A stretch of DNA of 62,458 nt, the filler included, from Platydemus manokwari (lineage: Eukaryota), in the NCBI GenBank assembly GCA_037951405.1. It is 6 parts of 6 records of this genome, joined end to end, with 100 filler letters (N's around TTAATTAATTAA, not from the genome) between each part and the next. Parts side by side here need not be neighbours in the genome. Positions count along the whole stretch, not along the records: positions 46,979 to 62,458 come from JBBMOY011284761.1; 5 more parts are not named here. The stretch is one strand, 5' to 3'. This document shows positions 57,338-61,918 of the stretch, piece after piece. The notes under the pieces were generated by a model. It saw only the letters and a list, made by a program, of their open reading frames with translations. It ran no database searches and had not been told where the DNA came from. The position numbers and the translations under genes were made by a program. The number at the start of each line of letters is the position of its first letter. The stretch's first letter is position 1.

Positions 57338-60300
57338 CTACAATGGTCTTTTACAAATAAATCTTTGTTTCTTTTCACATTTGGCATGTCTTATTATCAA
57401 CTTATCATTGATCTTGCTAATGAAAGAACATAATTGTGATTGATGATGATCGTGTGAATTCGACCTGTAAATTAAATAAAAATCCGGTTAATAATTGAAA
57501 ACATATTTAATAATCAATAACTTGTACATGACATGATTGTTGTTCTCTAATATCACCTTGTTAAAGGCCAAAGCTTGATCCAAATCGTGTATTGATTCAG
57601 TTGATAAAATGTTATCATTAATTGATTGGGTGGTTCTTTTTGAATGATTTTGTAATCTTTCACTCCATTGGCTATTAGTGAAATTGAACACATATCCATT
57701 TTTCATCAAATCAATAGTTTTGTTCATTCCATCAAAAATATTGTCAAATGAATTCACAATTGGTATTTCTAATTCTTCAAATTGATTAGTGTCAGCAGCT
57801 TGAATTATTCGATCGACAACATCCTTAATTGATTGACGATTCTTAAGATCAAAATATTTCAATAAAGTTTTCCAGTTCCATTTTTGTAATAGTTTAATGC
57901 GTTGTTTAATCTTTTGAATCGATAGTGGATTTAAAAAGATGCGAAATTTGTCGCTTAAATTTTCTTCATTTATTAAATGTATTATTTCTTTTAGCTCATT
58001 ACTATAAGGTAAATCTCTACTTATATTGTTAAGGGCATCATGAATCGATTTTTGAATTCTTGATACCCACAAAGAATGATCAATACTTTTCACTCTTTTT
58101 AATAATTCAATCCAGTTACTTGGGATTGATATATTATATTCATCTAATCTTTTCAAAGCGTTGATAATTTCACTGATCCAAATCATGAATTCGATAGATA
58201 TTTCATCGGGTTTTTTACTTTCGAATTTTAACAGAAAGTATTTCAATCGATTAATGATTTTAGTTCGATGTGGTTCCTTAATTGGTTTCAGAATTAGCTC
58301 AAGATTTATATTTTTTAATTGATTGTAAAAAAATATATATTTTTCTAAAAATATATTTCTATCAACGCTTTTATCATTGTTTATAAAAATAATTTTTCTC
58401 TTTTCGTAAAGCATAAAGATTATTTTTATTATTGAATTTTTTAAATTTTTATCTATCTTCTCATATTGTCCATCTTTAATCAATGATATGAACTTTTTGA
58501 TGATTTTAGAAATAATTTGTCTTTGATTTACACTGAAATATTGAATAAGTTCTTCCCATTTCAGTTCTTTAAGATCGTTTGTAAGATTTTTCATTCGTTC
58601 TTTAAAATCTTCTGTGATCTGGGAATTATTATTTCGTAATATTCTCAATTGATCAATAATCGTATGTACGGAATTTAAAAGTTTCGAATCGATTTTATCT
58701 AATTGTTTACTTTCAACCAATTTAATCAATAATTTGATGTTGATAACAAATTGTTGTCTACTTTTTATATCCACATATTTTATCATTTCTTCCCATCTAA
58801 AAGTTTTCAACTCTTCGATTAAACGATTCACCTTGACATATTTTTCTTCAAGTCTCTTAAAATGATTTTTTCGAATTTCTATTAGACCTTTGATTATGGT
58901 TTTTAAGGAATTTAATAGATTTTCATCGATTTTATCTAATTGCTTACTTGTAACGAATTTTATAAATCGTTGAATATTTGTAACGGAACTTTGTCTGCTC
59001 TTTTCATCAACATATTTTATCAGGTCTCCCCATTTCAATTCTTTGAGTATATCGAACAGATGTTTCGTTTCTACACTGATTCGAGGATAATTTGGTCTAA
59101 ATTTTTCCAGTTTCTCAATTATTTTTCCAATCCAAACAAGAAGATTATCGCTAACATTTCCTAATTGTAGATTCTTTGCAAATCCAAAGAATTCTTTGAC
59201 AATTTCCACAACATCTGGTCCCAACTTCTTTCCTATATTTTGAACAACCTCTAATGATTTTAGTTTATCGAAAATACTCAAATAATTGTTAAACTGTCGT
59301 ACAAAACCTTCTGTGAAGTTAGAATCAACCTTAATTACTTCCTTTAATGTTGAGATTATTGTGATAGTAAAATCAATTAATTTTGAGTCCATATTTACGA
59401 AGTTCTCATTGGTTAATAATAAAATGTATATTCTCTCGTTTTCAATGACATCTGGTCCAAACTTGTCTATGAGATATTGAATCGTATCTTCCCATTTCAT
59501 TTGGTCGAACCTATTTAAATAATTATTTATTATCGTTTTGATTTCTTGTGAAATGAAGTAATGATTAGCAATGATGTTCTTCAAATTTTTAATAGTGTTT
59601 CGAATCCAATCTCGAAGTTTTTTGTGGATATTAACAAATTGTTTATTGTCAGTATAATTCAAGAATGTTTCTCGTTGTAAAATCAATTCGTTTCTTCTTG
59701 ATTCGTTGATATATTTTGATAATTCTTTCCATACCAATCGATTTTGCAGCGTATTTAAATCTATAAAAATAATTTTGTGTTTTTCTGGATGGGCTTGGTT
59801 TTCGTTTATTAACATTTTTATTATACGATTTATTTCGTTGAGTAAATCAATATCGATTTTGTTGAATTGTTCGTTTCCCACCAAATAAATGAATGATTTT
59901 ATTGTATTTTCATTTTTCCATTGATTGTTTCCCAGGAGATTCGTCAACATTTCTAGCGAATGCATATCAATCAAAGTTGTCTTATATTTTATCGATATAT
60001 CCCTGACACTGTTTTCAATGATTTCTTTTATTGAATTGAACAGATCAGTAGTGATTTTATTATATTCTTTATTCAGTACCAAATTATTAAATAATGTAAT
60101 TTTGTATGATGATTCTTCTCTTACTTTTCTATCGAAATGCAATACAAGTTCTTGCCATCTCAATTCTCTTAATATCCTTGAAAACTCGGTAATTTTAAAT
60201 GTCCTAAATTTCTCTATTAAATTACTTAACAATTTAAACAAATCACTGTTTATTTCATTAAATCTCCGCTGATCTATCAAGCTGATAAATAGCTTAATTT

Positions 60301-61918
60301 TTGCTACAACTTCTAACGAATTTTTAAAGGCAATCTTTTGAACGATTTTCTCAAATTTCCAGTTTCTCAGCATTTCTGCATATTCGATATATTTATCTAT
60401 ATCCATGTTTTTGGATTCATTTTCGCTTTGATATTTTTGACTGATAAGCCGAAACCTTGAAACAGTCTTCTTTATCCAATCAATAAGTTCGGAATCGATA
60501 TAATGAAACATTTTTTTATCGACCAATAAAGTAAAGACATTTGTACTTTCGTTAATGTACTGTCTTTCATTTTCATCATAATAATTCAAAAGTTGTCTCC
60601 ATTTCAAATCATTTAATTGATCTACATACTCGTAGGATTTTTCAGCAATCTCAGAAATCTCACCATGCTTGAATTTACTAATTAATCTATGAATTGTAAA
60701 TATTTGATGTAGAATATTGATATCTATTTCCGAAAAACGATTCTCATTGATTAATGTGTTAGTTTTTGTAATTATTTCAGCAGCATTATTTATTTTAATT
60801 TCATCAACTATTTCAGCCCAATTCCATTTGTTCAAATCTTTTATAAAATATCCAACTACTTTAGCTATATTCTTTGTCCATGATACATTAGGTTGTGCTT
60901 CAAGACAATCTTCCAATACATCGAGAATTTCATTGAATATAGTTACATTAAGCAGTTTAAAACGTTTTTCATTTGTTATTTTAATTATATTTCCAATTTC
61001 CGGTACATAGTATTTCGGATCGCTTTCACGAATTTTCTTCACAATTTTAGGCCATTTCCAATCTTGTAACAGATTCACAACAACCATAAGAAGTTTGAGA
61101 TCTTTTTCCTTTAAACGTTTTTCATTTCGGTTTTTTATTTTATTAATTATTTCTTTTGAGTCAAATAAATCTTGTTCGGTAATTTTGTTGTACTCATTTG
61201 AATTTATTAATTGAGATATTGTTCTAAGTGTATTAATCCATTTGCTTTGATCAATGCCATCAATTTCATGAATAATATCCTCCCAATTCAAAGATATCAT
61301 CGACTGTAAGATGGATAAAATTTCGTGTCTTTCAAATCCTCCATATTTAATATAAATAACCCATATTCTTTTTAACAGTCTCATTGCAAATTCCACATTT
61401 TCAGAGAGCTCCAAACTTATTTTCTCATAATTTTTATTCTGAACGATAGATAATAATTTTCTTATCGTATTTGTGATGATTATTTTATGCTTATCATCCA
61501 CAAATTTCATTAATTTCTCCCAATTCCATTTTGTTAACCATTCAACATGTGATTTCCATTTGGCTTTATTTCGTATGTAATTATAATTTTTTTCTCGAAG
61601 TTTGTACATCATTCGATAAACGAAATCTTTATATGTAACAAGTAATCTCTGGTCTATTTGATTATAATTTTTATTGTTTATTAGCTTGAATATATTGCTG
61701 ATGCAGCTTTTCCAAATATGTTTCATTTCTGGATTTAATTCTCTGACGAACAATTGCAGATTTGTTTTATTATATTCATCACTCAATTCCGACCATAAAC
61801 GTAAGGTATCTTGAAATCTTCTATTGATTTTTAATTTATGTGAAACATAAATTATATTGTCCATATTGAAGTTGATTTGCGTTGAATCCTTCCAATTAAT
61901 AGTATTTGATTGGTTGAC
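57338..61918 (-). CDS. ~1500-aa tandem helical-repeat protein with C-terminal degenerate C-type-lectin-like domain; exons 61918-57528 and 57464-57338, 5' exon(s) uncertain
   Basis: 4.4-kb stop-free exon in very AT-rich DNA after acceptor ctatctag; ~17 repeats (L/W)xWxxLIxYxD...I..F..LVxxKxFxxIDxxLL; a 63-nt GT-AG intron leads to CSFISK..HAKCEKKQRFICKRPL*. Confidence 0.85.

Follow-up and report, generated by a model that had tools for sequence, protein, structure and literature searches.

What kind of protein, if any, is specified by a single open frame of more than 4 kb in DNA of about 27 % G+C, where a stop would be expected from the composition at about one codon in 12? The question is raised by a locus of Platydemus manokwari (assembly GCA_037951405.1), lying in a stretch of 62,458 nucleotides (the window), of which positions 46979–62458, AT-rich with 22–33 % G+C, were analysed. 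A single long frame is open in this piece, at 61864–57488 on the minus strand, with 1458 codons counted from an ATG at 61864. An earlier note on the same DNA (the original prediction) had described here a giant single-exon array of about 17 unrecognised helical repeats of about 70–80 residues. We found a gene of at least two exons on the minus strand, 61864–57528 and 57464–57338, separated by a 63-nucleotide intron, with a product of about 1,487 residues and about 180 kDa. As judged from the sequence, it belongs to a repeat family that is new and of very narrow distribution, and whose architecture is familiar.

The product of the large frame is rich in Ile, Lys, Leu, Asn, and Glu, has 32 tryptophans, a calculated isoelectric point of 9.3 and a mass of 176 kDa, and is, as had been noticed before, nearly free of cysteine (2 in 1458 residues). 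A 25-residue N-terminus is followed by 18 tandem repeats (R1–R18) and a non-repeat C-terminal region. The three peptides quoted in the original prediction are all present in the minus-strand translation, in one frame, as R13, R14, and R2, so that the repeats themselves stood, and only their number had to be corrected: an iterated hidden Markov model (HMM) together with alignment gave 18 units with a period of 62–85 residues, mostly 78–79. An HMM built from six seed copies found 15 copies at an independent E-value below 1e-3 in the real protein, nine of them beyond the seeds, compared with 0–1 copies (mean 0.04) in 50 shuffled sequences and one in the reversed sequence. The repeats therefore exceed chance. 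The unit consensus is approximately L-x4-W-x-E-L-x2-Y-I-D-x-K-x-R-Q ... I-x2-F-I-x-L-V ... [NK]-x-[FY]-x-K-I-D-x2-L-x3-I-x2-I-I, followed by a variable stretch of 15–30 residues. Two types could be recognised, namely type A (NW..LL..v.GID..W..RI), comprising R3 and R17, and type B (KWNW/LKW...KnRQ), comprising most of the others.

The array seems to be old, with more recent duplications on top of it. Core identity among the units is mostly 10–30 %, the highest values being 60 % for R13/R14 and 44 % for R13/R15. Adjacent units are nevertheless more similar than non-adjacent ones (25 % versus 20 %; permutation p = 0.0017), and R11/R12 (the GPDV units) and R13/R14 (the KSRQ..SKQLDKID units) are mutual best partners, which bears out the earlier suggestion of closer neighbouring pairs and serial local duplication. 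At the DNA level, the repeats are recognisable only between R13 and R14 (74 % identity over 146 nucleotides at a spacing of 237 nucleotides) and in R8, and Tandem Repeats Finder did not detect the repeats in the DNA.

Is this sequence unique to the locus, or does it have relatives elsewhere? An exhaustive profile search, with the 18-unit profile against 1.84 billion cluster representatives, returned four proteins. Three are true relatives, and the fourth (P0004) was rejected as a low-complexity false positive. P0001 (UniParc UPI000602F892) is a fragment of 533 residues with seven units (E 2e-99); P0002 (UniParc UPI00060AB4B2) is a fragment of 278 residues with two units and the C-terminal region (E 4e-18); P0003 is a fragment of 207 residues whose units run A-B-A (E 3e-12), encoded on a 980-nucleotide contig of JGI metagenome 3300031231, which we take to be a forest-soil metatranscriptome. 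Each of them stands alone in its own 90 % cluster and is 20–34 % identical to the gene product. Both unit types recur in the relatives, as NW...GID..W..RI (A) and KWNW...KnRq (B), and an alignment of 28 sequences (A6) shows the family motif, a tandem unit of about 78 residues with L-x4-W-x-E-L...[NK]-x-[FY]-x-K-I-D...I-I, in all four proteins. P0001 and P0002 also keep the C-terminal order of the gene, with a type-A unit followed by a QKWNW unit and the region beginning with NGY; a basic site after the NGY region is conserved as well. The search for contigs encoding the relatives returned the 980-nucleotide contig of P0003 only, and scans of metagenome contigs with P0003 and P0001 revealed no further locus.

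The relatives showed some peculiarities of their own. Residues 47–304 of P0001 hold three consecutive near-identical units, unlike any pair of units in the present gene. This triplet appears to point to a very recent amplification of units or to concerted evolution, and because of it the copy number appears to be still changing within the family. In the P0003 contig (L001, 1–980), the first 230 or so nucleotides repeat, in reverse complement, a section that comes later in the same array, which could reflect either a true inversion or an assembly artefact of the hairpin kind. A frame break of the one-base type near position 850 ends the called gene on this contig, whereas the repeats go on beyond it.

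One of the relatives, P0002, was decisive for the 3' end of the gene. The exon carrying the array had been placed at 57528–61918, and both borders coincide with splice-like sequences: a GTACAAG donor begins directly after 57528, the final base of the exon, and 61918 adjoins an acceptor-like ctag/GTC (the slash marking the splice point). That the array occupies one exon was also correct; the gene as a whole, however, has at least one further small exon on its 3' side. The large exon, from the ATG at 61864 to the donor AT/GTACAAG after 57528 (57528–61864, minus strand), encodes 1446 residues. An alternative donor, AA/GTTATT, lies six bases downstream, after 57522, and leaves the frame unchanged. 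A tblastn alignment of P0002 continues past the TAA at 57488 and down to 57350, and since the relative aligns through this stop, we placed the TAA inside an intron. The intron (57465–57527, minus strand; GTACAAG...TTTACAG) is 63 nucleotides long and in frame, and contains the TAA (57490–57488) that ends the mechanically called open reading frame (ORF). It is typical of the locus, as the introns of the neighbouring gene are 42–47 nucleotides long with weak donors. As its length is a multiple of three and it carries the in-frame TAA, retention of this intron would give a protein without the cysteine-containing tail, a possible alternative product.

The terminal exon (57338–57464, minus strand) follows the acceptor TTTACAG/ before 57464 and consists of 41 codons (57463–57341) and a TAG (57340–57338). 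Over 30 residues it shares 47 % identity with the C-terminal end of P0002 (BLASTP E 2e-9). The tail has three cysteines spaced C-x16-C-x7-C and ends in ..FICK, and all three cysteines are also found in P0002. The non-repeat C-terminal region of the large exon (57528–57700, minus strand) begins at the conserved NGY and overlaps the end of R18; it contains a KR site at residues 1409–1410, for which the counterpart in P0002 is RKRR. An AATAAA at 57309–57314 (minus strand), 24 nucleotides past the TAG, is a candidate polyadenylation signal, though a weak one in such AT-rich DNA. The two exons were handled as separate references in every search and in every fold prediction.

Could the frame nonetheless be without function, either as a decaying or selfish repeat-bearing ORF or as an artefact of assembly? 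Three observations might suggest so: the only sequencing run found to hold the sequence is not recorded as RNA, a protein language model gave a low "recognition" score, and a fragmentary copy lies nearby on the opposite strand. On the other hand, a run of about 1,460 open codons is not a product of chance, because the base composition predicts a stop at about every 12th codon. Identity among the units has fallen to about 20 %, yet both the frame and the pattern of hydrophobic core positions have been kept. In a relative, both the intron and the terminal exon are conserved. An independent Logan contig of 5182 nucleotides (run X1) covers 57200–62073 with zero differences, although X1 may be the assembly's own sample. 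Between R13 and R14, the ratio of nonsynonymous to synonymous substitution (dN/dS) is about 0.34, below 1, but as weak evidence with dS about 1.25, near saturation. We consider a non-functional origin very improbable, and the gene is, as far as its sequence can tell, a real and intact protein-coding gene.

The original prediction could not assign the repeat to a known family, and our searches led to the same result. Pfam searches with the whole protein, with tri-unit pieces and with single units gave nothing above threshold; specifically, the spectrin profile PF00435 did not match the whole protein at E≤1 or tri-unit pieces at E≤10. Searches of PDB sequences with the protein and the unit profile gave nothing below E 0.2, two feature-based searches of the ESM Atlas gave no usable match, and the whole protein had no match when compared by word index with 5.8 billion proteins. 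Likewise, no Pfam match was obtained for P0002, for its residues 165–278 or for the terminal exon, and a word search with the C-terminal region of P0002 returned P0002 itself only. Rfam had nothing in the piece 46979–62458, and a search of the literature on flatworm helical repeats found nothing useful.

The one recurrent signal was to PF13251 (DUF4042), matched weakly over profile positions of about 90–160, with 14.3 bits for the whole protein, 17.9 for R8-R9, and 18.6 for one P0001 unit. The repetition of these sub-threshold matches at the same profile positions might indicate kinship with the DUF4042 region of HEATR6, the array being a HEAT-like alpha-solenoid that has diverged very far. 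Every single stretch, however, stays below the curated cut-off of 27 bits, and P0001 as a whole passes it, with 46 bits, by summing its three near-identical units. The matches are also not independent, as the units are homologous to one another. Moreover, a period of 78 residues with three unequal helices (7, 19, and 21–41 residues) does not fit HEAT hairpins of 40–47 residues, and the structural matches described below are closed three-helix bundles rather than solenoids. A HEAT-like origin thus appears highly unlikely.

The predicted fold is in line with the tandem helical bundles that had been proposed. With an alignment of non-overlapping three-unit windows of the protein and pieces of P0001 and P0003 (A3), AlphaFold2 modelled R13-R15 as all-helical, with a mean predicted local distance difference test score (pLDDT) of 86.8, 147 of 243 residues at 90 or above, and a predicted template modelling score (pTM) of 0.47. 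Each modelled unit has a Trp-bearing helix of 7 residues, a helix of 19 residues, a short K-I-D turn, and a long helix of 21–41 residues. At the border of R13 and R14, the long helix runs unbroken over 41 residues (model residues 44–84) into the next unit; at the border of R14 and R15 there is a four-residue break. In the model, the structural bundle is offset from the sequence unit: its first part comes from the end of the preceding long helix, its middle from the Trp helix plus the 19-residue helix, and its last part from the start of the long helix that follows. A structural comparison with VIA-align against 48,161 PDB representatives matched three-helix bundles of 70–80 residues to model residues 58/70–144 and 145–228, with Z between 5.7 and 7.2. 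The best match was a designed bundle (Z 7.2, root-mean-square deviation 3.0, 81 residues aligned), and the others included SCIN-B (Z 6.8, 77/77), SCIN-D (Z 6.6, 69/71), the NR-alpha region of Fap1 (6.5), EbhA (5.7 over 101 residues), and the C-terminal bundle of Sse1. With Foldseek, neither the PDB nor viral models yielded a match below E 0.5, and the best template modelling score in an ESM Atlas shape search was 0.34. The safe statement from the model would be that of generic three-helix bundles in series, with no family membership.

The helix crossing the unit border also bears on the function. The original prediction had compared the array with nematode polyprotein allergens, which are defined by a signal peptide, regular basic cleavage sites, units of about 130 residues, and the binding of fatty acids or retinoids, and had proposed amphipathic helical bundles, possibly lipid-binding or membrane-active, that might be processed into single units. 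Tandem helical units with a conserved Trp and hardly any cysteine would be compatible with this idea. In other respects it finds no support: the 21 dibasic sites are scattered, with no regular dibasic or tetrabasic sites at the unit ends, no signal peptide follows the ATG, the unit is 78 residues long as against about 130 in the allergens, and no Pfam match was found. Furthermore, the bundles are confidently predicted as closed and the helices as passing over the unit borders. Because the last helix runs into the next unit, a connected chain suits the data better than units that are cut apart, and we regard a polyprotein of this kind as very improbable.

We somewhat favour the interpretation that the gene encodes an elongated scaffold protein restricted to its lineage, in which connected bundles form a chain that would be spectrin-like in design but not in ancestry, the protein most likely being cytoplasmic. 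In each unit, the Trp helix, the 19-residue helix, the conserved turn N/K-x-F/Y-x-K-I-D, and the long helix would close into a three-helix bundle, to which the preceding unit adds the tail of its own long helix. The long helix would continue between bundles, giving a connected chain of spectrin-like design, and the product could serve as an elongated structural spacer or scaffold, the C-terminal domain of which would be the functional end and serve for attachment or pairing. The conserved positions of the unit are almost all in the hydrophobic core or at helix caps and the surfaces vary, which suggests a structural module rather than a series of binding sites. We infer the rod shape, the cellular location, and the role.

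Several observations weigh against this interpretation. With a pTM of 0.47, the relative orientation of the bundles, and hence the rod shape, is not established by the model, and the alignment behind it had only nine rows, mostly the protein's own repeats. The Z values of VIA-align are below the level that the tool sets for specific similarity of helical bundles and lie in the range of a common helical arrangement. The C-terminal region, to which we assign the functional end, gave an unusable model with a pLDDT of 45. No RNA run was found to hold the gene sequence. Finally, the acceptor-like site at 61918 allows for upstream exons beyond the edge of the piece at 62458, possibly with a signal peptide, and three conserved cysteines in an otherwise nearly cysteine-free protein would suit an extracellular, disulfide-linked protein.

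The last two points lead to the question of where the protein begins and on which side of the membrane it works. Upstream of the ATG, 18 open codons (61865–61918, minus strand) begin at the pyrimidine-rich, acceptor-like ctag/GTC in phase 0, and might be a 5' extension of the exon or else 5' untranslated region. The repeat profile had no match between 61918 and 61864, and an extra unit ("R0") around the ATG found no support, at -0.8 bits. A hydrophobic segment in another frame at about 61970–61917 was considered as a signal anchor and rejected as AT-rich noise, there being no in-frame ATG and no in-frame pair of donor and acceptor.

With an upstream signal-peptide exon, the protein could instead be a secreted matrix, adhesive, or surface-coat rod, with disulfide-linked tails and a convertase cut at the KR/RKRR site. 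The in-phase acceptor-like site and its pyrimidine tract, the three cysteines conserved only in the tail, and the conserved basic site after the NGY region would all fit such a protein, and EbhA, a bacterial surface rod, is among the solved proteins in which three-helix bundles follow one another in series. The spacing of the tail and its ..FICK ending may also resemble the last strand of C-type lectin-like domains, which are recognised by a profile match and an alpha/beta fold with two disulfides; the tail has three cysteines. Against secretion, no exon combining an ATG with a hydrophobic stretch is visible in the 540 nucleotides upstream, up to the edge of the piece at 62458, the ATG at 61864 stands in a good context (A at -3, G at +4), and a TAG directly precedes 61918. 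The tail and P0002 lack a Pfam lectin match, and the C-terminal model is of no help. The ATG at 61864 is the simplest start. It is the only in-frame ATG, and the N-terminus that follows it has neither a hydrophobic stretch nor a signal peptide, for which reason we favour a cytoplasmic location. We therefore hold the cytoplasmic scaffold as the preferred interpretation and consider an extracellular rod rather unlikely, if clearly less so than the other alternatives.

The units of the array, all on the minus strand, are arranged as follows from the N-terminus. R1 (residues 26–107; 61544–61789) is degenerate and lacks the Trp, R2 (108–185; 61310–61543) is of the KWNW type, and R3 (186–263; 61076–61309) is of type A (NW..ii.eidGID..W). 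They are followed by R4 (264–341; 60842–61075), R5 (342–414; 60623–60841), R6 (415–496; 60377–60622), R7 (497–561; 60182–60376), R8 (562–627; 59984–60181), R9 (628–701; 59762–59983), and R10 (702–779; 59528–59761). The GPDV units are R11 (780–859; 59288–59527) and R12 (860–937; 59054–59287), the latter missed by the iterated 56-column core HMM and placed by alignment. R13 (938–1016; 58817–59053) and R14 (1017–1095; 58580–58816) are the pair with 60 % core identity, and R15 (1096–1180; 58325–58579) and R16 (1181–1242; 58139–58324) follow. The type-A unit R17 (1243–1323; 57896–58138) corresponds to the penultimate unit of P0001 and the first of P0002, and R18 (1324–1401; 57662–57895), of the QKWNW type, matches the last unit of both.

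A lone partial unit was found at 56185–56397 on the plus strand, 1.1 kb past the 3' end of the gene. It is 57 % identical to residues 113–165 of P0002, closer than R18 is, and has about 58 % DNA identity to R18; an acceptor-like tttctag precedes it, and a TAA stands where P0002 goes on to NGY. This unit is probably the relic of an inverted paralogue, the other possibility being an exon from a convergent paralogue. Further away, a multi-exon gene at 47717–50946 (minus strand) resembles thymidine/pyrimidine-nucleoside phosphorylases and matches Glycos_trans_3N and Glycos_transf_3 in Pfam. Its exons of about 100–230 nucleotides are split by introns of 42–47 nucleotides with the weak donors GTAAAA, GTATTA, and GTTGAT; in one place, near 48168 and 50047, neighbouring exons are about 1.9 kb apart. 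The contrast with the uninterrupted 4.3-kb exon of the repeat gene, pointed out in the original prediction, is thus evident. Between the two genes, 52979–53978 reaches a G+C content of about 33 % and has short ORFs on both strands, one of which (53731–53973, minus strand) contains a zinc-knuckle-like C-x2-C-x3-H-x4-C motif with no significant Pfam match.

What might such a gene mean for its bearer? The 176-kDa frame has remained intact even though its own units are only about 20 % identical, for which reason the protein must matter to the organism. The present work adds a well-defined repeat domain that has no database entry, with an alignment of 28 sequences and a confident predicted fold. 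In our judgement it is an even call whether the gene and the three fragments represent, as its only visible members, an undescribed family of repeat domains in a narrow eukaryotic lineage, a family that would have invented very long chains of miniature spectrin-like bundles independently of spectrin and in which the copy number, as in P0001 and R13-R15, would still be changing. If this were true and the protein turned out to form a fibre specific to the lineage, be it cytoskeletal or extracellular, the group would have a new structural element in it. If the host were a parasite or a regeneration model, structural proteins confined to its lineage could be candidate tissue markers or antigens.

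Among the known systems, the DUF4042 region of HEATR6 (PF13251) shares with the array a weak, recurrent sequence similarity over about 40–70 residues, but every single unit remains below the curated threshold, and the fold predicted here consists of bundles and not of a solenoid. Nematode polyprotein allergens of the ABA-1 type are similarly encoded as uninterrupted tandem helical units with a conserved Trp in each; they differ in unit length and in their regular cleavage sites, signal peptide, and Pfam match, none of which was found in our protein. Bacterial rods and small bundles, namely Staphylococcus aureus EbhA, SCIN-B/D, the NR-alpha region of Fap1, and EzrA, are the best structural matches for a single unit, although they belong to a different kingdom and, at 5–13 % identity, show no sequence relationship. 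The spectrin repeats of spectrin, alpha-actinin, dystrophin, and plakins are longer (about 106 residues, compared with about 78 here), and their profile PF00435 does not match our protein. No spectrin chain was among the best structural matches, and the gene product has no actin-binding, EF-hand, or other accessory domains. What the two have in common is the design itself: tandem three-helix bundles with a core Trp in many copies per protein and a helix continuing from bundle to bundle, the last feature being predicted here from the model helix 44–84 that crosses a unit border. A spectrin-like design might thus have arisen here without detectable descent from spectrin.

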